Positions 15,638 through 62,687 are shown, counted from the first letter of the stretch. The stretch is DNA of 64,000 nt from Gekko japonicus (GCF_001447785.1 NW_015167086.1:62001-126000); one strand, 5' to 3'. Notes: generated by a model not told the origin, from the sequence alone. Numbers and translations are program-made.

Positions 15638-15845
15638 CTGAAGATTTCATTCAGCGAGAACCAGCTGGAGAGGACCTTCCAGTACCCATCGGAGGGTTCC
15701 CTGCTGGAGGAGTTCGGCCCCCCTGAGGAGTCAGAGACTTTGGTGTCTACCAACCCCCATGGGGACGAGGAGGAGGAAGAGGAGGAGCTGCTGATGCTTC
15801 ATCGTGGCCTCCCTGGCCTATTGAGGACCAAACCCCTCATCGTGG
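15638..15845 (+). CDS. PPP1R18: Phostensin (PP1 regulatory subunit 18), penultimate coding exon
   Basis: ctgcag acceptor and GTGAG donor. Translates LKISFSENQLERTFQYPSEGSLLEEFGPPEE...EEEELLMLHRGLPGLLRTKPLIV, matching the phostensin C-terminus including the KISF PP1-docking motif. Synteny upstream of DHX16 as in the MHC. Confidence 0.93.
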
Positions 15846-16764
15846 GTGAGTGCCTGGGAGCCTCCGGAGCTGCCGCCGTGGTGTGCCTGAGAGCATCGTG
15901 GTCATTCCGAGAACGTTGCTCCCCCCCCCACACGCTCAGACTAAATTTTGTTTTAATTGTAGCTTATGTTTTAATGTAACTTATCTATTTTATGTAAGCT
16001 GCCCTGAGCCAGCTTCGGACAAGAGGGTGGGGTAGAAATTCAAAAAATAAATTAAATAAATAAATTTAGGGCATTTTCACAAAAGTCCTTGACAGAGTTA
16101 CACCCTTCTAGGCCCCTTGGCTTTATTGGACTTAGGAGGGTATAACTCTGCTTAAGACTGCACCGTTAGAAACTCATTGAATCAAGACAAGTTGGCAGCT
16201 GGCCGCCAGAAAGAGAGGGGAATGCCTGGTAGACAAACGGTCATGTCTTACTGAGAAGTAGTAGAAGAAGAAGAAGAGATTGGATTTATACCCCGCCTTT
16301 CACTACCCAAAGGAGTCTCAGAGCGGCTTACAAACTCCTTTCCCTTCCCCTCCCCACAACAGACACCCTGTGAGGTAGGCGGGGCTGAGAGAGCTCTTGA
16401 CAGAAACTGCTCTTTTTCAAGAACAGCTCTGACAGAACTATGACTTGCCCAAGGTCATCCAGCAGGTGCAAGTTGAGGAGTGGGGAATCAAACCCAGTTC
16501 TCCCAGATTAGAGTCCGCACACTTAACCACCACACCAAGTAGAAGCCTCACATGAATTACCAGACCAGACCAGACCGTGTCTGGTAGCAGGTGGAGGCTT
16601 TAGATGTCTGAATGCTCCCCAACATAAAATATTCCCTACACATACAAAACGAATGTGACAGAGTGAGTGAATTGATTTATTCCAGTCAAAGACTAGCCCA
16701 AAAGCAAATACATTACAAGAAATGATACCTTTAAGAAGTTATGCGAATTATATTGAAATAAGCC

Positions 16765-16990
16765 AAATGAGAAGGGAGCACTCACTGGAGAAGACCCTGA
16801 TGCTGGGAAAGATTGAAGGTCAAAGAAGACGGGGACGGCAAAGGATGAGATGGTTAGACAGTGTCATAGATGCAACAAACATGAAATTGAGCAAACTTCA
16901 GAGGACGGCGGAAGACCGGAAGGCCTGGCGTGATCTAGTCCATGGGGTCGCGAAGAGTCGGACTCGACCGTGCGACTGAACAACAACAAC
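16765..16990 (+). mobile_element. BovB/RTE LINE 3' end
   Basis: Encodes SLEKTLMLGKIEGQRRRGRQRMRWLDSV...VHGVAKSRTR; (CAA)n tail. Confidence 0.88.
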
Positions 16991-17713: not shown

Positions 17714-17918
17714 CAATGTTCCCTCTAAGCAGAGTTAGTGTGAGCTAGCTCAGTTTTTTTAGCCTCCGGCTCACACATTTTTCTCTTAGCTCAGGAAGGA
17801 TGGCTCCAGAGCAAACTGATTTATGCAGTAGCCAAATCGCTCGCTCACAGCTTTAATGCCAGGAGCTCACAAAGTAGCATTTTTGCTCACAAGACTCCAC
17901 AGCTTAGAGGGAGCATTG
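17714..17918 (+). mobile_element. ~205-bp hAT MITE (CAGTGTTCCCTCTAAG termini); further copies at 12378-12583, 36312-36518, 41438-41643, 52338-52546, 62107-62313, partial ~13655-13714
   Basis: Near-identical copies with 8-bp TSDs: ctgcccaa, ctcacagg, atgagtgg, gtaaggac. Confidence 0.9.
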
Positions 17919-18333
17919 CTGCCCAACTAGAGTTATTGTCCTGTACGGTCTGCATACAAGGATGAGGAATTAAAATAAGCCTTGGTGAAAAAGCTGTAGA
18001 AACTAATTCAAATGTAGATCCCAGGAAACTGCCCTGGGGATGGGTGGGAATTGTGCTTGTCAAGCTGAAGCAAAGCTGTGCATCTAAATGTTAGAAATAA
18101 AGAAGTTTTGTTTTACAAACAGGCCCTTGCAATGCAATCCTAAGAATCACCCTCTTCTAAACCCACTGAATTCAATGGGGTTTAGAAAGGTCGATTGTTT
18201 AGGAGGGCCATTGGAAGCCGATATTGGAGCTCCATCTAGAGGCCCATCTTGAGAACTGCAGTGACTTTTGGAAATCCTCGTACCTAAGGTTTGGGGAGAG
18301 CATTCAAGTAGGCTTCTTGGGCTTCCTTATTAG

Positions 18334-19257
18334 CAGGCCCGTAGCCAGGATTTCTTGTGTCGAGGGGGCCTTTAAATTTCTCGGGGACGCCTAATTGATT
18401 TGGTTAAAGTAAGTTAAATTAAGTGCCCCTTTCACATAGCTGCATTTGATGGCCTCCTCCTCTCCTTCCCCACGCCATTCTCCCTTCTACAGGGGCCGGA
18501 AGGCAGGTGGGAAGGTGAGGCAGTGGAGGAGTGCGCCTGTGCACACTTGCCCACTAAGAGGCCCTTCAGCCAGCCAAGGCTGAGCGCGGCCGGCCTAGGA
18601 CAGAGCGCTGCTGCACCCGCCTCATTTTGTCTCCGCTCTCCTCCACTCTGTTCGGCGGAGGCGGTGCTGCTGTTTTTCCCCACCCCCTCCCCCCCCCCCC
18701 CCCTAACAGCAGCCGTAGGCCAAGCCCTGGTAGTAGCCACCGCTACGCACGCCTCGTTTTACCCCGGCCAGCTGCCTGCCCACCATGGCCTGCGTGGGGC
18801 AGGGCTGCTCATTTTTCATTGCATATATTCATACAGGCGGCCATCCCGGGAAGAAGCGCTGCTGCTGCAGCTGCCTCGTCTCCGCTCTCCCCCACACGCT
18901 CCACCCTCTGCTTGGCAGCAGCGTCACTGCCGTCTTTCCGCCCCCTCCCCCGGTAACAGCAGCAGCAGACCAGGTCTGGGTAGCAGCCGCTGCTGCTGTG
19001 TGCACCTCGTCCTCCCCCAGCCAGCAGCCTGCCCACCATGGCCCGCGTGGGGCTGCTGGTTCTTCATTGTGTGTATTCGTACAAGTGGGGCTGCTGGCAG
19101 GTGGAGAAAGGGGAGTCCTCTGGGCAGTGGCGGCGAGTCCTCTGGGCAGCGCTCAGAGTCGGGGGGGCCTGGGCTGTGTAGGAAGTCACTGGGGGGGCCT
19201 GGAAGGAGGTTGGGGGGCCAGGCCCCCCAGGAGGCCCCACTGTTGCTGCGGGCCCTG
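18334..19257. mobile_element. GC-rich non-autonomous hAT-type DNA transposon
   Basis: TIRs caggcccgtagc / gctgcgggccctg; 8-bp TSD cttattag; absent from the paralogous site in repeat A' (~22573). Confidence 0.88.
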
Positions 19258-19323
19258 CTTATTAGTGCCTCCATCCCCTTTTTACCCTGACAAGCCCGGT
19301 TTTCTTTCTGTCTTCCTTCCCAG

Positions 19324-19343
19324 ATGAGTCTTGTCGGCGGTAA
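19324..19343 (+). CDS. PPP1R18: Phostensin terminal coding exon (DESCRR*)
   Basis: Polypyrimidine tract plus CAG at 19321-19323. The phase-1 join G|AT GAG TCT TGT CGG CGG TAA gives DESCRR-stop, the known phostensin C-terminus. Confidence 0.92.
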
Positions 19344-20108
19344 CCCCACCCGTCCTTCTCCGTCACCAGGAAAGATGGAGGATATTTAAGGATTCATGTC
19401 AACCTTCAAGTCCCTCAACTGGACTTTTATGTCCTTTCGTCTTCCACTGACTCTTACACCAGGGAAAGAAGCTGGGACCATGCCAGACTGGACCGTTTTG
19501 CCCATTTTCCTAGGGCTCTGGGTGTTTCTCTCTTCACGATGGGAGAAAGCGCTTGAAAGACACCTTCATCGATATTGTTGTTCTATCTCTAGCACTGAAA
19601 AAGGGACCTCAGAAACTCCCCCACCCGAAATCTAAATGGCAAGGATCTGGGTCACGTGACAGGCTGCCCAATCTAACCTGTACAAAGAGACTGCATCCAC
19701 ATGGTTTTGACTGAAAGGAAATCTTTTTTTCTTTCTTATCCTGATGCTAAAACAACTTAGGAACAAAGAGGTTAAAACAGCCAGCAGGGCGGAGCAGCAA
19801 ACCTCATGCCCGTCTGCCGGCCTCCAGCGTTGCAGGCGATCCCCAGCCAAGGGCTGATTTCTCCTTGCTGTTTCCCAAACACAGCCCACACTGGGTGGAG
19901 GGATGTTTCTAATTCCCAGATCAACCTTTTTGTAAAATCCTTTAGGATCCTTGTCAGATCAACCTTTTTTGTAAAATCCTTTAGGACCCTTGTCATTTTA
20001 AAATTTTCTAATCGCTGCCATGTTGTGGGAGGGGAGTTGGAGGGGGGAGGGAGGGACTAGCTTGGGGGGGCGGGGCCATTTCTTTCTTTCCCGTTAATTC
20101 AGAACATA

Positions 20109-20114
20109 TTTATT
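20109..20114 (-). terminator. RIOX1 polyadenylation signal followed by decayed poly(A) remnant
   Basis: AATAAA on - about 20 nt after the stop; GAAAGAAAGAAA follows at 20090-20079. Confidence 0.7.
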
Positions 20115-20132
20115 TTGTTCATCCATGACACA

Positions 20133-21953
20133 TTACGCAGAAAACAGAGGGCTCTTAGTAATCAGCAATCCCTTTTCAAACAAAACAGTGGCTAAAGCAA
20201 TCTTATCATCCAAGGTGACACATGGAAGGTCTTCCACACTGACATACTTCGGGTAAGAAGAGAGCAAGAATTCAATACCATCTGTATATTCTGGCTCGAT
20301 TTCACAGTACTTGGGCTCCTCCTTATGATACACCCTTGAATTTTCTGCGGTGTAATACAGCAGTGTTTTGTCTCCTTCGTTGCACAGCCTGACGATTCCA
20401 TACCGAAGCAACCGTACTTGCGTATTTTCACTGAATGGGACGTCGACGTCTCGCACGTCTCCATTCTCCCACCGGGCAGGAAGTCCATATACACTGAGCG
20501 TCTTTTCAGTCTCAGTCAGCACTGGAGGGAGGCAGTCGTGGAAGAAACCCTTGGCTTTTTGATCCACCGCAGCGTCGACTGGTGCATAGTTCATTAGTTT
20601 AGTGATCAAAGTCTGGACCTTTTTCATAAAGGCGGTTCTGCGAGGATCAATCACATCGGAGTTCACGACTCCTGTGTATGCCAGGTAATCTGTAGGGAGA
20701 CCCTGGCGGTATTCCACATCCTCCTCAATGGCCATCTGCAAAGCTGCAGGAAGGAGTTTTTCCAACAAGTCTCCCCAGGAGTTTCTCTGGAACGAGGAGA
20801 CAGTTATGTGGAGTGAATGGGCATCGGGGAGGCAGTCCCCTTGATGGATAAACCCCCGTGGAAAATACAGCAGGTCCCCAGCCTCTAATACGGTTTCCAG
20901 AACCGGCTCCCCGATCTCCTCCTGAGCAAAGTTGGGGCTTGAAAACTGGGGCAACACCTCCGCTTCTTTCCGAGGGCTGTAAACCCGCCAGTGCTTCTTC
21001 CCTTCGAGCTGGACGACAAAGGCTTCGATGTCGTCATAATGAGGAGCAAAGCCCTGAGTGCCGGCAGGAGTCAGGTAAGTGTTGGCTCCGACCATGCTGC
21101 CAAACTGCTCCTGCAAGAGAGACAGGAAGTGCCAGACTGTGGCAGAAAAGGCCTGGGGGTTCAGCATCCTGAGGGAGCAGCCGTTCCGGTAGAAGTCCCA
21201 CACCACGGCCGGCAGGGCCCTGCCCAGCGGATTGTGCGTCTCCCTCTTCCCGTCTTCGTAGCTAGTCACGTCCAAGTTCACACCGAACTGGACCTCTTGG
21301 TCGCGCAGGACGGCATCAAACTCGGCCGTGGAAAAGAGCCCCTGGTAGTAAGCCGGGTTGCGCCGGCGGATGAGGAGGGGCTTCTTCTCCCAGTGCTGGC
21401 CGAAGAACCGCTGTGAGGAGACGGGGGCGATCAGCCACTCGAAGAGCCTGGCTGCCTTCTCCCGGCTGTGCTGGACCTCCCCCAGCTCCTGAAGGAGGTG
21501 CCGGAGCGAGGGGCCTGCCTGAAACTGCTGGGCAGAAGCTCGCTCCTTTTCCTGTCCCGCCGCTGGTGGTGCAGCCGCAGCCGAGCAACTTTCGCCCGCC
21601 ATCGGACTCCGTTCACGGTTCTCCTGCAGCGCCACTCTTGGGCCGGATGAGGTAGCCACAAGACGAGAGCGCAGTTTCATCCTCCGTCTCTTTGCTAGCT
21701 TCGCTGCTGCAGCATCCACCACCGTCGGGACAGGATGGGAGTCTAAGGGATGTTCCCCATTGGCGGCCCCTGAAGGAACGGGGCAAGCCCCGGGTGTTCG
21801 CCTCTTAGTACGCCGTTTCTTTATCTTCTGGCTTCCGGGGGAGACAGTCGGGCTGTGGGCTAGGCAGGGTGGCTGCTCATGTGGACCTCCACGTGGCGCC
21901 ATTGAACGGTAGGCAGAGAGAGCAGACACAGGTGCTCTCCGCAGCTCCTCCAT
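20133..21953 (-). CDS. RIOX1: Ribosomal oxygenase 1 / NO66 (JmjC histidyl hydroxylase), single-exon CDS, probable retrogene
   Basis: 606-aa uninterrupted ORF. JmjC motifs are intact: YLTPAGTQGFAPHYDDIEAF (HxD), GKKHW (2-OG Lys) and GFIHQG (distal His). The C-terminal dimerisation/winged-helix region ends LATVLFEKGLL. Confidence 0.96.
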   Translation of the reverse strand: MEELRRAPVSALSAYRSMAPRGGPHEQPPCLAHSPTVSPGSQKIKKRRTKRRTPGACPVPSGAANGEHPLDSHPVPTVVDAAAAKLAKRRRMKLRSRLVATSSGPRVALQENRERSPMAGESCSAAAAPPAAGQEKERASAQQFQAGPSLRHLLQELGEVQHSREKAARLFEWLIAPVSSQRFFGQHWEKKPLLIRRRNPAYYQGLFSTAEFDAVLRDQEVQFGVNLDVTSYEDGKRETHNPLGRALPAVVWDFYRNGCSLRMLNPQAFSATVWHFLSLLQEQFGSMVGANTYLTPAGTQGFAPHYDDIEAFVVQLEGKKHWRVYSPRKEAEVLPQFSSPNFAQEEIGEPVLETVLEAGDLLYFPRGFIHQGDCLPDAHSLHITVSSFQRNSWGDLLEKLLPAALQMAIEEDVEYRQGLPTDYLAYTGVVNSDVIDPRRTAFMKKVQTLITKLMNYAPVDAAVDQKAKGFFHDCLPPVLTETEKTLSVYGLPARWENGDVRDVDVPFSENTQVRLLRYGIVRLCNEGDKTLLYYTAENSRVYHKEEPKYCEIEPEYTDGIEFLLSSYPKYVSVEDLPCVTLDDKIALATVLFEKGLLITKSPLFSA

Positions 21954-21982
21954 GCTTCAGGTCCGGATGTGGAGACTGAGAG

Positions 21983-23362
21983 AAGCTGTGTATCAAAATG
22001 TTAGAAATAAAGAGGTTTTGTTTATTTGTTTTACAAACAGGCCCCTGCAATGCAATCCTAAGAATTACCCCCTTCTAAACTCACTGGCTCAGAAGTTAAG
22101 GCGCTGAGCTGCAGACCAGAAAGTCTGTAGTTCGGCAGTTCGAGACCCGAGTGCCGCGTGACGGAGTGAGCTCCCGTCTCTGGCCCCAGCTCCTGCCAAC
22201 CTAGCAGTTCAAAAGCAAGAAATTGCAAGGAGATAAAATAGTGGGAAGGTAACAGTGTTCTGTGCAACTCGACGTTTAGTCATGCCGGCCACATGACCAT
22301 GGAGAATTCTTCGGACAGTGCTGGCTCTTCGGCTTGGAAACGGAGATGAGCACCGCCCCCCCAGAGTTGGATGTGACTAGCTTTCAAGCAAGGGAAACCT
22401 TTACTAAATCCACTGAATTCAATGGGGTTTACAGAGGTTAACTGTGTAGGATGGCCATTGGAAGCCAATATTGGAGCTCCATCTGGAGGCCCATTTTGAG
22501 AGCTAGAATGACTTTTGGAAATCCTGGTACCTAACGTTTGGAGAAGAGCATTAAAGGGGGCTCTTGGGCTCCCTTATTCATGATTTCCTCCCCCTTTTTA
22601 CCCCGATAATTCCTGTTTTCTTTCTGTCTTCCCTTTCTAATAAGTGTTGTCAGTGGTAACCCCACCCATCCTTCTCCATCACCGGGAAAAATTGAGGCTA
22701 TTTAAGGATTCGTGTCACCCTTCAAGTCCCTCAAACTGGACTTTTGTCTTCCACTGACTCTTACACCAGGGAAAGAAGCTGGGACCATGCCAGACTGGAC
22801 CGTTTTGCCCATTTTCCTAGGGCTCTGGGAGTTTCTTTCTTTACGATGGAAAAAAGCATTTGAAAGACACCATCTATATTTTTGTTTTAACTCCAGCACT
22901 GAAAAAGTGACCTCAGAAACCCCCCCACCCGAAATCTAAACAGCAAGGATCTGGGTCACGTGACAGGCTGCCCAATCTAACCTGTACAAAGAGACTGCAT
23001 CCACATGGTTTTGACTGAAAGGAAATCTTTTTTTTTTCCTTATCCTGATGTTAAAGCAACTTAGAAACAAAGACATTAAAACAGCCAGCAGGGCAGAGCA
23101 GCAAACCTCATGCCCGTCTGCCGGCCTCCAGCGTTGCAGGCGATCCCCAGCCAAGGGCTGATCTCTCCTTGCTATCTCCCAAACACAGCCCACACTGGGC
23201 GGAGGGATGTTTCTAATCCCCAGATCAACCTCCTTTTTTTGCAAAATATCTGGGAGTTATCCTTTAGGACTCCTGTTATTTTAAAGTTTTCTAATTGCTG
23301 CCATGTTGTGGGAGGGAAGTTGGAGGGAGGAGGGAGGGACTAGCTTTGGGAGGGGGGGCAAT
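21983..23362 (+). repeat. Direct repeat copy A' with decayed PPP1R18 terminal exon
   Basis: Second copy of 18073-20080. The acceptor and coding part are degenerate at ~22637-22659 (ctaataagtgttgtcagtggtaa versus ccagatgagtcttgtcggcggtaa). Interrupted by a Sauria SINE. Confidence 0.92.
22087..22403 (+). mobile_element. Sauria SINE
   Basis: Full body with ACCTTT tail; ~12-bp TSD ctaaactcactg/ctaaatccactg; absent from repeat copy A. Confidence 0.88.
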
Positions 23363-24799
23363 TTTGGTGGCCAACAACCTATCAGTATTGGGGACGGATC
23401 TGTACCAAGGATGGTGGACGGGGTATTTCTAACAGTCTTTTTAAAATGCCGTTCTGGAACAAGGAAATTCCAAATGGTATGGCTATCTGGGTTGTTACAA
23501 CCAAGTAACAGTTGGTATTAAGGCATAGAAGTGGGCAAACATGGACTACAAAACTTGTGTTTAGAAGTCAAGAAAGGGAGGCAGCTGGGTGTGGAGACGG
23601 CAAACAACCAAGTGGTCTTTGCCCCACCCACTTCCTGTCTGGCATTCAGAACTCAAAACAGGATTGGACAAGTGGGCACGAAGGAGAGGGTGGGACTGAA
23701 TGGATAAGCAGAGGCAGGTTGAATGTTAGAAAATGGACTGGTATCTTGACATACTTTTTAAAAAAAATGATCATTCACTGTAAATGAATGTTAACCATTC
23801 CTCACAGCATGGCATTCTGAAGTAGGGAGGGGGCAAAGAGAGTAATTTAGAGAAGGCTTTTAAAAAAAATGTCAGCATGCACAGCAGTCACAACAACTGG
23901 AAATACTGACATTCAGGACTTTGAGGACTCTCGGACAAGACAGTGCATTCAACCAATGGCGGGAACAGCTCAGATTCCTCTGTGCCAATGACTCAAGCCC
24001 AGCCCCTGGCGAACAGAACAGTGTTCTGGAGGTGTAGGGGCAAATAGGCCAATAGGCAGTGGCAAGCTTGGTCATGACTAAAACCAGGTCATGTGGTGCT
24101 ATCATCTGAAGGTGGTACTCAGTTTCTTCGAACAACCTCACCCCATCCTTCTGCTGGGATCAGAGCCCTGTCAGCCACCCCTCCACGCGTGCGACTCTCG
24201 TTCTGCTGAAAACACACAACCACGCTGGAAAGGTCAGATCCAAGGGGCAGTGTTTCTTAAACGCCTATCCGGGAATCCCCCCACCTATGAAACATACGTG
24301 TCTTGTGGAAAACTTGTGTTCGATGGCTTGTGGGAAAAGGGTGTGAGAGCGGACGCAGACTGTGAGGACGGAGGAGCGATGAATGTATGAGAGGAGAGAG
24401 TTGTGACTGTAGGAGCACCAGGGGTTAGTCAAAATGTGGGGGGCAGAGTGTGGACCGAGCAAGAAGCATGAGTGAGCGGATGAAGGAAGTGCAGAGGGGA
24501 AGGCACAAAGAAAACGGTGTGTTTCTTCCCTCTTTCCTTCCTTACTAATTTATCTTGTTACCTGTGCACAGTTTTTATTATCTTCCCCCCCCCTTCTTTT
24601 GCACTGTGGGAACAGCCGTGCCTACAGCCCGGGAACAAGTCAGCGAGAGAATGACTGGGCATGGCAGACATCTCGTCCTCTTACAGAGGCAGAATGGAGC
24701 CTTGCCCGGATCAGTGTACGTGAGGGGAGGGCTGAAGCAGCTGTGTCCAGCCATTTCCATCAGTGTTTTTTTATATATATTATTATTATTAATAATAAC

Positions 24800-24805
24800 A
24801 ATAAA
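24800..24805 (+). terminator. Candidate ancestral PPP1R18 polyadenylation signal
   Basis: AATAAA after an AU-rich tract, at the end of the unique sequence that continues from repeat copy A'. Confidence 0.5.
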
Positions 24806-25149
24806 TCAGAATGATGTTGCACGCTGATTCACCTTGTCTGCTGTGTTGTATCAGCCATGATAGCCAAACAGACTTCCATGAGCAGAGACAATATGCCTTT
24901 GAATGTAAGATGCTAGGAGGAAACAACAGAAGATTGTTGCCTTCAGCAGTTCACCTGTGCAGCTCCGAGAGGCGTCTGTACTCACTGCCGGGAACTAAAT
25001 ACGTTAACTTTGGTGTGCCTGAGGAGTGCTTTTATCTTTATTCATTGTCTTTACAGCACTCTGCCAAGGGGGAAGAGCAACCTCTCTTGAGTTGTGAAAC
25101 CACAGAAGGGCCAAAAGGCCATATCCTGCTTCAACACTCAAAGACTGTG

Positions 25150-27240
25150 CACTGGAACAGTTGGTCACAGAACCAACGAGAGGGGTGGTAATCCTGGACT
25201 TGGTTATGAGCCAGGCTCAAGACCTGCTGAGAGATGCAGACGTTGCTGCACCAGTTAGAAACAGTGACCACAATGCTATTTAATCAATGGAAAATTACCC
25301 CCTGAAGTCCAAAACTGTGACTTTTTATTTCAAAAGAGGGAACCTTACAAAAATGAGGGAAATAGTTAAAAGGAAGCTGAAAGGGAAACACAAGAGAGTC
25401 AAATCCCTAGAGGATGCCTGGAAGCTACTTAAAACTACACTAATTGAGGCCCAGATAGAATGCATTTCACAGGCTAGGAAAGCCACTGCCAAGTCTAAAG
25501 AATGCCAGCATGGTTAACAACAGAAGTCAAGGAAGCTATGAAAAGTAAAGAGGCTTCTTTTAAAAAGTGAAAGGTCTGCCCCAGTAAATTGAATGAAACG
25601 GACCACAGGCTCTGGCAAAAGAAATGTCAGTCGATAATCAGGCATGCAAACAGTGAATTTGAGAAGCAGGTTGCTAGAAGCATCAAGAAAAACAGTAAAC
25701 ATTCATTTAAATATATCTGGAGCAGGAAACCAGCCAGAGAAGCAATGAGCAAAGAATAAAGGGACTGCTAAAGGATGACAGGGAGATGGCAGAGATGCTC
25801 AATTAATTCTTTGCTTCTGTATTCACTGTGAAAAGTGTGGGGCTTGTACCCATGCCACAGCCACTATTTTCAGGAAGGGAGTCTAACCCAGTACTGAGTC
25901 AAAAAGTCCTGCCTCACCAGCCTTTTGGAGTTCTTTGAGAAACTGAACAAGCATGTAGAAAATGTTGACCAAGTAGACATTATATACTTCGACTTTCAAA
26001 AGGCTTTTGATAAGGTATCTCACCAAAGAGGACAGGTTCTCTTAAGGATTAAAAACTGGGAAAGAAGACGGGTTCCCTTAAGGATTAAAAATGGGTTAGA
26101 TGATTGGAAGCAAAGAGAAGGGGGGAAATGAGCAGTTCTCACAGTGCAGGGAAGTAAGCAGTGAGGTCCCACAAGAATCAGTATTTTATTTATTAATGAT
26201 CTTTATGAATGATCCTTATTTAGGGGTGAGTAGTCAAATGGCCAGATTTGCAGATGACACAAAGTTATTCAGGATGTTGAAAACCAAGGATGACTCCACA
26301 AACTGGGTGAGTGGGCAGCAATGTGGCAAAAGTGCAATGGTGGTAGATGTAAGGTGATGCAAATTGGAACAAAAAATCCCAGCTTCTGGTAAAGGCTAAT
26401 GAAGTCTAAACTTGCTGAGACTGAGAGGAAAAAAGAACTTGGGGTTGTAGTAGATAGCATAATGAAAGTGTCAATCTAATGTGCTGCAGCAGTGAAAAGG
26501 GCAAACTCTATATTGGGTATTATTAAGAAAGGGACTGAAAACAAAATGGCCAATGTTATGATGCCCCTGTATAGATCTATAGTGCAGCCTCCTTTGGAGT
26601 ACTGTGTGCAGTTCTGGTCACTGTATTTCAAAAAGGACATTGCAGAGCTGAAAAAAGTACAGAAGAGGGCAATCAGAATGATTAAAGGATTAGAGCACCT
26701 TCCCTATGAGGAAAGGCTGAAGAATCTGGGACTCTTGAATTTAAAAAAGAGACAACACAGGGTGTGTGTGTCATAGGATAGAGGTTTATAAAATTATGCA
26801 CAGGGTGGAGAGAGCTAACAGAACTTTTTCTCCCTCTCCCAAAATACTAGAAGTCAAGGGCAGTGAATGAAGCTGATGGGGAGTAGATTCAGGATCGACA
26901 AAAGGAAATAATTCTTTACAAAGCAAATGATTAAAATGTGGAATTCGCTGCCAGAGATGTAGCGATGGGCACAGGCATAGACAGCTTTAAAGGGGGATTA
27001 GACAGACTCATGGAGGATACATCTATTAGTTACTACTAGCCATGGTGACTAAAGGAAAACTCAGCGTTCACAGACAGTAAACCTTTGAATCCCAGAGCCA
27101 GGAAGCAACATCAGCACAAGCCTCATCCTCTATGCTGTATTGCTGGACCTCCAGAGAAACAGGTTGGCCACTGTGTGAGACAGGATGCTGGATGAGAAGG
27201 ACCACTGGTCTGATCCAGCAGGGCTCTTATGTTATGCTCT
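25150..27240 (+). mobile_element. Degraded CR1 LINE (ORF2 and 3' end)
   Basis: Fragmented RT motifs DFQKAFD, FADDTKLF and LEYCVQFWS; CR1-type 3' tail. Confidence 0.88.
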
Positions 27241-27439
27241 TATGCTAACACAACAGTGTTCACCTCTCAGTCCCCCACAAATTAAGTCATGCAGTCTTCA
27301 ACCATAGTTTGCCACAAGAAGAGAACAAATGTTCAACAGAACATCAGGGAGGGGCCCTGGCTCAGTGGCAGAGCACCTGCTTCAGATGCAAAAGGTCCCA
27401 GGTTCAGTCCCCAGTTCCTGCAGTTAGAGGATGCCAAAT

Positions 27440-29630
27440 GCTTTCCTGATAGGCTCCTGTGCCTTCTGTGTCCCTTGTGGAAAGTGGGGGACATGTATGC
27501 ATGCCACAGACCCTATTTTCAGGAAGGGAGTCTGAAGAACTGAGCCAAATTGAGGTGACCAGTGATGAAATTCTAAACCTACTGGGTATATTAAAAACTG
27601 ATAAGTCTCCAGGTCTTGATGGCATACACTGAGAGTACTTAGGGAACTCAGTTGTGAGATAGTTGATCTACTAACCCATATAGGTAACCTATCACTAAAT
27701 TCAGCCGCTGTACCAGAAGACTGGAGAGTAGCAAATGTGCCACCAATTTTTCGAAAGGGATCCAGAGGCGAACCAGGAAATTACAGGCCAGTCAGCCTAT
27801 CACCAGTCCCAGGCAAATTAGTATAAACTGTAATCAAAAATAGAATTGTTAGGCACATAGAGGAACAAAGCCTGCTGAGGAAAAAATCAACATAGCTTCT
27901 GCAAAGGTCCTGCCTCACCAACCTTTTGAAGTTCCCCGAGAAACTGAACAGGCAGTGACCCAGTAGATATTATATACTTGAACTTTCAAAAGGCATTTGA
28001 CACGGTACCTCACCAAAGATTCCTGAGTAAACTTAGCAGTCATGGGATAAGAGGATGGGTTCTCCTATGGATTAAAAACTGGTTAAATGATGGGAAGCAA
28101 AGAGTAGGAATCAACGGACACTTCTCACAATGGAAGGAAGTAAGCTGTGGGGTCTCACAAGGATCGGTACTGGGGCCAGTACTATTTAATGTATTCATCA
28201 GTCATTTGGAACTAGGGCTAAGTAGTATAGTGGCCAAGTTCGTAAATGACACAAAATTATTCAGGATCATGAAAACCAAGGCTGGCTGTGAAGAACTCCA
28301 AAAGGACCTCCACAACCTGGGTGAGTGGGCTACTATGTGGCAAATGAAGTTCATTGTTGGTAAGTGTAAGGTGATGCACATTGGGACAAAAAATCCCAAC
28401 TTCAAGTATAGGCTAATGGGATCTGAACTTGCTGAGACAGGGGAAAGGATTTGAGGGGGTCGTAGTGGATAGCTCAATGAAACATAAGAACATAAGAGAC
28501 ACCAATGTTGGATCAAGCCAAAGGCCCATCCAGTCCAACACTCTGTGTCACACAGTGGTCAGAAATACCAGGTGCCATCAGGAGGTCCACCAGTGGGGCC
28601 AGGACATTAGAAGCCCTCCCACTGTTGACCCCCCCCCCAAGCACCAAGATGACAGAGCATCACTTGCCCCAGAGCCCCTATCTATACCTTGTGGCTAATA
28701 GCCACTGATGGACCTCTGCTCCATATGCTTATCTAATTCCCTTTTGAAGCCGTCCATGCTTGTAGCCGCCACCACTTCCTGTGGCAGTGAATTCCATGTG
28801 TTAATCACTCTTTGGGTGAAGAAGTACTTCCTTTTATCCGTTCTAACCCGACCACTCAGCAATTTAATTGAGTGCCCACAAAAGTGTCAACCCAGTGTGC
28901 TGTATCGATGAAAAAGGCAAACTCTATGTTAGGGATTAGGAAAGGGATTGAGAATAAAACGGATGATATCGTAATGCCCCTGTATAGATCTATGGTGTGG
29001 CCTCATTTGCAATACTGTGTACAGTTCTGGTCACCATATCTCCAAAAGGAACAAAGGACATTGCAAAGCTGGAACAAGTACAGAGGAGGGCAACCAAAAT
29101 TATTAGGGGGTTGGAGAACAAGTATCTGGGACTTTACAGTTTAGAAGAGACAACTAAAGGAGGACATGATAGAAGTTTATAAAATTATTCTTGGAATGGA
29201 AAGAGTTGGCAAAAAGAATTTTTTCTCCCTCTCCCAAAATACTAGAACTTAAGGGCATTAAATGAAACTGACAGGCAGTAGGTTCAGGATGGGAAAAAGG
29301 AAATACTACTTTACACAGAGAGTGATTAAAATGTGGAATTTGCTGCCAGAGGATGTAGTGATGGCCACAGGAATAAAAAGCTTAAAGGGGGATGTAATAG
29401 ATTAATGGAGGATAAATCTATCAATGACTACTAGCCATGGTGACTGAGGAGAACCTCCACATTCAGAGGTACTAAGCCAGAGCCAGAAGGCAACATCAGG
29501 AGAAGGCCTTGACCTCTATGCCCTGTCGTTGGCTGTCCAGAGGAACTGGTTGGCCACTGTGTGAGACAGGATGCTGGACTAGATGGACCACTGGTCTGAT
29601 CCAGCAAGTCTCTTCTTATGTTCTTATGAA
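27440..29630 (+). mobile_element. Degraded CR1 LINE with nested inverted CR1 3' end (~28481-28880)
   Basis: NYRPVSL-like and FQKAFD...GVSQGSVLGPVLFNVFI motifs; the nested piece is nearly identical to 32570-32952 in reverse. Confidence 0.88.
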
Positions 29631-30859: not shown

Positions 30860-31122
30860 CAAGGACCTCCCCTTACCGCCGGAAACTCAAGCTACGTGAC
30901 ACTCTAGCCTTTCACTTCTCTATCGTAAACCTATCTCGCGCCTTATGCCTGTGAGATAAGAATCCGAAACCCGTCCTTTCCCTGTGTCTATGGTTGGTCT
31001 CCAACACCGGAACTTATTCTTTCCGTGAGCTCTGATTGGCTAGGAGAATCACGAACACGAAAGAGCAGCTGCAACGGCGACCGGAAGAAGCCGTTTGGGG
31101 GGCGATTTTGTCCCCCTCAACC
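30860..31122. promoter_or_regulatory. DHX16 CpG-rich housekeeping promoter, possibly bidirectional
   Basis: Several ETS CCGGAA sites (~30879, ~31007, 31081), a CCAAT box as ATTGG at 31035-31039 and TCTCGCG at 30934, directly upstream of the Kozak-context ATG (accATGG). Confidence 0.75.

Positions 31123-62687
<31,565 letters not shown>

Follow-up and report, generated by a model that had tools for sequence, protein, structure and literature searches.

How does an intact gene come to lie between two kilobase-long copies of a piece of another gene, each of which includes the site of a coding exon? The question is raised by a locus in a 64,000-nucleotide stretch of Gekko japonicus DNA (GCF_001447785.1 NW_015167086.1:62001-126000; hereafter the window, from whose first letter all positions are counted), where a RIOX1 gene is enclosed by two direct repeats, A and A', both derived from the 3' end of PPP1R18 (phostensin). 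We consider it rather probable that a RIOX1 mRNA was inserted there in a single event, by target-primed reverse transcription mediated by a long interspersed element (LINE), with the second-strand break or primer located about 1.05-1.1 kb upstream, and that A and A' are thereby the two copies of one target-site duplication (TSD). The anatomy described below is that of the filled locus, as found in the G. japonicus window and in contigs of two other individuals (X1 and X2).

Self-comparison of the interval from 15 to 27 kb revealed three colinear direct matches between the copies (18073-18168 with 21983-22086, 18151-18331 with 22398-22578, and 19275-20081 with 22591-23364). They delimit copy A as 18073-20081 and copy A' as 21983-23364, i.e. 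colinear direct repeats adjoining on both sides an insert of 1901 bp (20082-21982). After subtraction of the transposon insertions private to each copy, A measures 1077 bp and A' 1053 bp. The two could be aligned over 1039 columns with 119 differences and six indel events (88.5 % identity), and the Kimura two-parameter (K2P) distance between them is 0.126, or 0.109 without CpG sites. A and the insert have no other match anywhere in the 64-kb window, and the region contains no gap (N). A preliminary description of the locus had proposed that the insert is directly flanked by a repeat on either side and that each copy, freed of later insertions, measures about 1.05 kb; both statements hold, its coordinates were right to within a few bases, and the dot-plot and pairwise alignment that it suggested provided the repeat boundaries in the window and the identity given above. 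Its right end of the duplication, set at 23362, agrees with the end of the match in the window (23364), whereas the true end probably lies at 23430, as discussed below from an X1 contig.

Target sequence thus adjoins both ends of the insert as direct repeats about 50 times longer than a usual TSD. Copy A begins with AAGC and has a T-run at its end, and the outer flanks, GAAGCA and GGTGGC, do not match each other. No short TSD belonging to the insert itself was seen, the last bases of A being repeated neither at the start of A' nor after A'. The possibility that the repeats are the long terminal repeats of a retroelement was considered and ruled out, as they have no TG…CA ends and no outer TSD of 4-6 bp, and enclose a host exon.

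The identity of this exon was established from the host gene. The penultimate coding exon of PPP1R18 lies on the plus strand at 15638-15845, encodes the KISF motif that binds protein phosphatase 1, ends in a phase-1 GT donor, and is recognised by the Pfam family Phostensin (PF13914, E 2.3e-6); it is 97 % identical to a Gekko kuhli model and 91 % identical to Crotalus adamanteus phostensin. This exon was searched alone, and the C-terminus was compared with the database models so found, i.e. short models of G. kuhli, C. adamanteus and Sphaerodactylus townsendi, all of which end in …KPLIVDESCRR. The left part of copy A (18073-18333, plus strand; repeat of 21983-22086 plus 22398-22578) corresponds to the end of the last PPP1R18 intron, and its right part (19266-20081, plus strand; repeat of 22591-23364) comprises the polypyrimidine tract, the acceptor, the terminal exon and 3' untranslated region (UTR). 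Here, the polypyrimidine tract is followed by CAG (AG at 19322-19323) and by AT GAG TCT TGT CGG CGG TAA (19324-19343), which in phase 1 reads D-E-S-C-R-R-stop. Since this in-phase reading reproduces the C-terminus of the squamate models, A holds the true terminal coding exon of PPP1R18. Copy A' consists, on the plus strand, of a left part (21983-22086) and a right part (22398-23364) with a dead acceptor and terminal exon (at about 22638-22659) and the copy of the 3' UTR; it has TA where A has the acceptor AG, and four of the six terminal-exon codons are changed. The earlier proposals that the duplication took in the 3' splice site and terminal exon of PPP1R18, and that A keeps CAG where A' has lost the AG, were thereby borne out.

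The insert carries a single intact open reading frame (ORF) of 606 amino acids on the minus strand (20133-21953, stop included), in which Pfam recognises JmjC_2 (E 4.5e-35) and RIOX1_C_WH (E 1.1e-51). Residues 149-603 align without gaps to the human NO66 structures (E about 1e-190), and the iron site is kept, both as the HxD motif (PHYDD) and as the downstream histidine (HSLH). As judged from its JmjC fold, iron site, dimerisation region and C-terminal winged helix, the predicted product is the ribosomal oxygenase RIOX1/NO66. The closest protein is G. kuhli RIOX1, which has the same length and 93 % identity with no gaps, the changes falling mostly in the disordered N-terminus. In a maximum-likelihood tree built from 29 sauropsid RIOX1 proteins, the branching agrees with that of the species, and Gekkota is monophyletic (Shimodaira-Hasegawa-like approximate likelihood ratio test, SH-aLRT, 99). 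Accelerated evolution of the relocated gene was looked for in this tree and was not seen, the Gekko branch being the shortest among geckos. On the agreement with the species tree and this short branch, the predicted protein is a functional ortholog and not a decaying copy; the protein search returned one RIOX1 protein per gecko species.

The insert is as large as an mRNA would be, and its ends resemble those of one. On the 5' side, a leader of 29 nt (21954-21982, minus strand) adjoins A' directly. On the 3' side, the stop codon is followed by a trailer of 43-51 nt (20082-20132, minus strand), which includes an AATAAA signal (20109-20114, minus strand). An A-rich, (GAAA)-like remnant of 9-14 nt begins 16-20 nt past this signal and merges into the end of A, appearing on the plus strand as a T-rich tract at about 20080-20092; (GAAA)-like stretches are a frequent decay product of A-tails. 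On the plus strand, the T-run of the target, the T-rich remnant and the antisense gene follow one another in this order, the geometry expected if the nicked plus strand had primed cDNA synthesis.

Each repeat copy has received a transposon of its own. In A, a 924-bp element (18334-19257, no strand assigned) is bounded by a perfect 8-bp TSD, CTTATTAG, present at 18326-18333 and 19258-19265, and by imperfect terminal inverted repeats starting with CAGG…; it is absent from A', and reads cover it 2-9 times as deeply as unique sequence. From these structural features alone, it would be a hAT-like DNA transposon. A Pfam search of the element returned no transposase ORF and no recognisable protein, and it is therefore regarded as non-autonomous. 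Within it, about 254 bp are present twice in tandem (18607-18835 and 18861-19083, 68 % identity), its body having a G+C content of 65 %. In A', a repeat of 311 bp resembling a short interspersed element (SINE) occupies 22087-22397 on the plus strand, between the copies of a decayed 18-bp TSD (22069-22086 and 22398-22415). Both TSD copies match A at 18151-18168 and differ from each other at 5 of 18 positions; the 18-base overlap between the first two A/A' matches is the target duplication of this repeat. The window contains three more copies, 82-84 % identical, and reads cover the repeat to a depth in the millions. A hAT element in A and a Sauria SINE in A' had been named in the preliminary description; a hAT-like element and a SINE-like repeat, each with its own TSD, were found there. 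Another very high-copy repeat, also with a depth in the millions, lies immediately left of A (17717-17920), where many contigs break or join other copies.

Support for the locus from other animals was obtained by comparing 5951 bases with four sequencing runs; X1 and X2 derive from other individuals with variants of their own, and the raw DNA run was too thin to inform. Contigs of X1 and X2 bridge the passage from the left flank through A into the hAT-like element, and that from the element back into A, and an X2 contig (20079-22131) bridges RIOX1 and A', so that three of the four junctions are supported by other individuals. The word depth in X2 is similar throughout (A 94-100, RIOX1 83, A' 71-103; overall about 60-100). 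By these independent data, each of the two repeat copies exists and is single-copy. It had been argued earlier that the private transposons show the event to be old and speak against an artefact; this stands, and is joined by a divergence of 11-19 % between the copies, equal depth and the presence of several haplotypes. The read support that had been suggested as a check was thus obtained for three junctions, with even depth, and is missing for the exact sequence where A meets RIOX1.

At this junction, an X1 contig fits the window from the left as far as 20068 and continues with 75 non-fitting letters. Contigs of X1 and X2 that come from the right agree with the window down to 20078/20079, beyond which 40 and 56 letters, respectively, do not fit. 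Among the 40 letters of X1, a run of 13 is unmatched and the others match the window up to 23423, in the flank right of A'; the last of the 13 together with 20078-20083 spell TATTTCT, as does 23424-23430. We infer that, in X1, copy A goes on for about 72 bases homologous to 23352-23423, and then continues with 12 G-rich bases, TATTTCT and the tail. The arithmetic fits this reading, as 75 + 40 - 30 = 85 (with an assumed k-1 overlap of 30 bases) and 72 + 13 = 85. If it is right, the duplicated target probably ends with …GGGGTATTTCT|AACAG at 23430, which is closer to the preference of the LINE-1 (L1) endonuclease. A further 66 bp of duplicated target (23365-23430, plus strand) would thus probably be present right of A', with a counterpart in A that is absent from the window and seemingly present in another individual. 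The window would then be short of about 76 bp at 20069-20077, probably as a deletion allele between similar G-run/T-run motifs or as a collapse of the G-rich tract. Free-gap alignment and fuzzy search for this extension within the window alone gave nothing usable; 23352-23364 and 23417-23430 are alike, which makes a short match ambiguous.

According to the scenario that we favour, a LINE enzyme would have copied a polyadenylated RIOX1 mRNA into cDNA from a nick in the plus strand, in a T-rich site of the PPP1R18 3' UTR, either at …CAATTTT|GG (23364) or, more likely, at …TATTTCT|AACAG (23430|23431), the orientation of the inserted gene being opposite to that of PPP1R18. About 1.05-1.1 kb upstream, at 18072|18073, the second strand would have been broken, or primed by a DNA end; in such insertions, a distance of 7-20 bp is usual. 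Once the two long overhangs had been filled in, the last part of the final intron, the 3' splice site, the terminal exon with its six codons and some 0.75 kb of 3' UTR would have been present twice. The copies would subsequently have diverged, A keeping its acceptor and exon and gaining the hAT-like element, A' losing its acceptor and gaining the SINE, while RIOX1 would have stayed under purifying selection. The repeats lie directly against either end of the insert, without a short TSD inside them, and a single event would explain both boundary coincidences. The preliminary description had offered either distant second-strand cleavage or a repair-associated insertion, and this pair of options is supported by the abutting repeats, the mRNA-like ends and the lack of a short TSD.

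Several observations weigh against this scenario. The tail remnant is only 9-14 nt long and impure, and both candidate nick sites deviate from a perfect TTTT/AA (TTTT|GG at 23364, TTCT|AA at 23430). The window letters at the A|RIOX1 junction (20068-20079, a G-rich tract) are those that the contigs of two other runs do not reproduce. Divergence between A and A' is uneven, with a K2P distance of 0.188 over the intron part (318 columns) and of 0.095 over the 3' UTR part (701 columns). The comparison covers the filled locus alone. Finally, RIOX1 is intronless in the window, as it is in mammals and birds, being multi-exonic in fish and amphibians according to a study without reptiles (PMC6006756); the lack of introns is therefore no proof of an RNA step, and was probably inherited rather than caused by a recent one. 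The term retrogene, used in the preliminary description, consequently draws its support from the mRNA-like ends and the location, and none from the absence of introns (PMC6006756).

The main rival dispenses with the LINE endonuclease: a break or collapsed fork at the boundary between A and the right flank would have been healed by synthesis-dependent strand annealing or break-induced replication, which captured RIOX1 cDNA (or DNA) and copied the neighbouring kilobase a second time, giving the same A-RIOX1-A' product. Proximal duplications with donors within 5 kb, as well as chimeric acceptors with a donor on another chromosome, are common in vertebrates (PMC2671141), and both the short tail remnant and the imperfect match of the target to TTTT/AA would suit such a repair. 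We nevertheless regard it as unlikely, as none of 39 inspected proximal duplications had a polyA/T tract (PMC2671141), whereas here an A-rich remnant stands at a proper distance from AATAAA and next to the target T-run, and the 5' junction shows no clear microhomology or filler. A captured chromosomal fragment would require no RNA at all; with a parent expected to be intronless (PMC6006756), a 1.9-kb piece of DNA holding the single-exon gene would look alike in its coding part. Yet the limits of the insert lie 29 nt ahead of the ATG and directly after a polyadenylation signal with an A-rich remnant, which would be odd for random breaks and makes DNA-level transfer quite improbable.

Nor do we see much in favour of two independent events, i.e. 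an ordinary retrocopy followed by the placing of a copy of A at the 5' end of the gene, or a tandem A-A' pair hit exactly at its joint. The uneven divergence does indicate a history more complex than one clean event. Such a course would however demand two boundary coincidences (the end of A with the 3' end of the insert, and the start of A' with its 5' end) and a short TSD of the insert, which was not seen; by our own estimate, the chance of a hit within a few bp of the tandem joint, given a hit in the approximately 2.1 kb, is about 0.5 %. This course is accordingly improbable. As for an assembly artefact, such as two haplotypes placed in tandem, the letters at 20068-20079 that two other runs fail to reproduce reveal at least a local error or polymorphism. 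Against it stand the 11-19 % divergence, the private transposons each with its own TSD, the absence of an N gap, the even X2 depth over A, RIOX1 and A' and the three junctions bridged in two other individuals, which render an artefact very unlikely.

The unevenness of the divergence bears on the age of the event. Within the 3' UTR part (19430-19900 versus 22740-23200), identical runs of 92, 84 and 67 bp occur; in permutations under uniform divergence, the 92-bp run has p about 0.001, and a 300-column stretch with 14 differences p about 0.0002. Gene conversion, selection or UTR constraint would thus have acted, and the age is uncertain accordingly. A structured RNA or a tRNA was considered as the cause of the similar 3' UTR block and rejected, as Rfam and ARAGORN gave no match; homologous minus-strand ORFs in A (19632-19889) and A' (22936-23244) belong to no Pfam family and were taken as a by-product of the high identity. 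The neutral rate of squamates is roughly 0.5-1.5 x 10^-9 per site per year. At such rough rates, the event would lie tens of millions of years in the past (about 40 to more than 100 million), with the uncertainty just stated; the 5 mismatches among 18 positions of the SINE TSD are consistent with an old event.

RIOX1 of G. kuhli (KAL8212974.1) and a phostensin C-terminal model (KAL8212973.1) bear consecutive accessions on one record of 151,239,192 bp, so that the two genes are most likely adjacent and the insertion would predate the split of the two Gekko species. It is probably common to both. The two accessions are labelled UNVERIFIED_CONTAM by their source.

Kilobase TSDs are not without precedent. 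L1 TSDs usually measure 5-30 bp and exceed 100 bp in up to 10 % of the events recovered in HeLa cells; in repair-deficient cells, lengths of up to 5.3 kb and a median of 1495 bp were recorded (PMC5223499). Large ones in cultured human cells go back to Gilbert 2002/2005 and Symer 2002, as cited in Servant et al. (Genetics 2017, PMC5223499), who also foresee exon duplication by this route and later recombination between the long repeats. Tandem duplications of 1-10 kb associated with polyadenylated L1 insertions are on record from tumours and from L1-induced clones, and have been 'regarded as large TSDs' (bioRxiv 10.1101/2024.12.14.628481). The preliminary description was therefore right that LINE TSDs are usually shorter than about 30 bp, and overstated the novelty of a longer one (PMC5223499; bioRxiv 10.1101/2024.12.14.628481).

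With the events in cultured cells, the gecko locus shares an insert set between direct repeats of its target, of a length within the range from over 100 bp to 5.3 kb, which a distant second nick would explain. Those events are fresh and somatic, stem from engineered L1 and are commonest when nucleotide excision repair is defective, whereas the gecko locus would have a cellular mRNA as cargo and is germline, fixed, apparently tens of millions of years old and provided with a working gene. In the tumour duplications too, an insertion, there polyadenylated, occupies the joint of a small tandem duplication; they are somatic and not evolutionary. The repair duplications of Pace et al. 2009 (PMC2671141) resemble the locus in that a break receives a copy of DNA situated less than 5 kb from it, at times joined to a second donor from elsewhere; their proximal cases lack a polyA/T tract, whereas here the distal partner is mRNA-like and the proximal donor abuts the break. 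The mechanism is thus of a known kind, and what is new is a natural, fixed and old case with a working conserved gene and a duplicated host coding exon. As an old, fixed event, a kilobase TSD is rarely described, no search for fixed germline cases having been made.

Relocated ('orphan') retrogenes can replace their parent gene. The Gekko RIOX1 resembles them in that the protein search yielded only one RIOX1 for each gecko species covered and the Gekko protein behaves as the ortholog in the tree, and differs in that its parent was probably itself intronless. It is possible, although we put this forward tentatively and with some doubt, that the only RIOX1 of Gekko was retroposed antisense into the PPP1R18 3' UTR in one kilobase-TSD event, which provided PPP1R18 with a spare acceptor and exon and RIOX1 with an upstream region, the parent being lost and the two genes becoming an obligate sense-antisense pair. 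If such a relocation with parent loss did take place, it would be a natural, fixed and functional result of a process that has so far been encountered mainly in repair-deficient cells and tumours.

Insertions with long TSDs are predicted to be short-lived, their repeats being prone to recombine, and the locus would be a surviving old germline example. It also displays selection after the event, one acceptor having been kept while the other decays, and offers a natural substrate for studying the choice of the second strand in target-primed reverse transcription. It moreover calls for caution with retrocopy pipelines: a survey of primate retrocopies accepted TSDs of 5-30 bp only (PMC2912911), and under such a limit natural kilobase cases would be missed.

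The neighbourhood of the locus fixes its position in the genome. Downstream of RIOX1, exon 1 (31036-31437) and the DEAH-motif exon (48175-48591) of DHX16 were recognised on the plus strand by a search of solved structures, human DHX16 being the best match and, for the N-terminal exon, the only one. With PPP1R18 and DHX16 as its flanks, RIOX1 sits antisense in the 3' region of PPP1R18, upstream of DHX16. The order PPP1R18 then DHX16 is thereby kept as in the human major histocompatibility complex class I region. In two bird gene models, RIOX1 is instead fused with an acyl-CoA thioesterase domain, a hint that the ancestral neighbours of this gene were others. A motif scan of the plus strand found no AATAAA or ATTAAA between the PPP1R18 stop and RIOX1, the next ATTAAA being at 23075 and the next AATAAA at 24800. 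RNA reads (unstranded) run unbroken over 19.3-23.65 kb, and the transcripts of PPP1R18 and RIOX1 may overlap in antisense.

Remains of LINEs lie on both sides of the locus. At 16671-16976 is the tail of an ORF with the motif …RGRQRMRWLD…, which is typical of BovB/RTE-like elements. Between RIOX1 and DHX16, reverse-transcriptase fragments are scattered over 25100-29200, with a match to the Pfam domain RVT_1 (E 2.4e-16) at 27948-28451.

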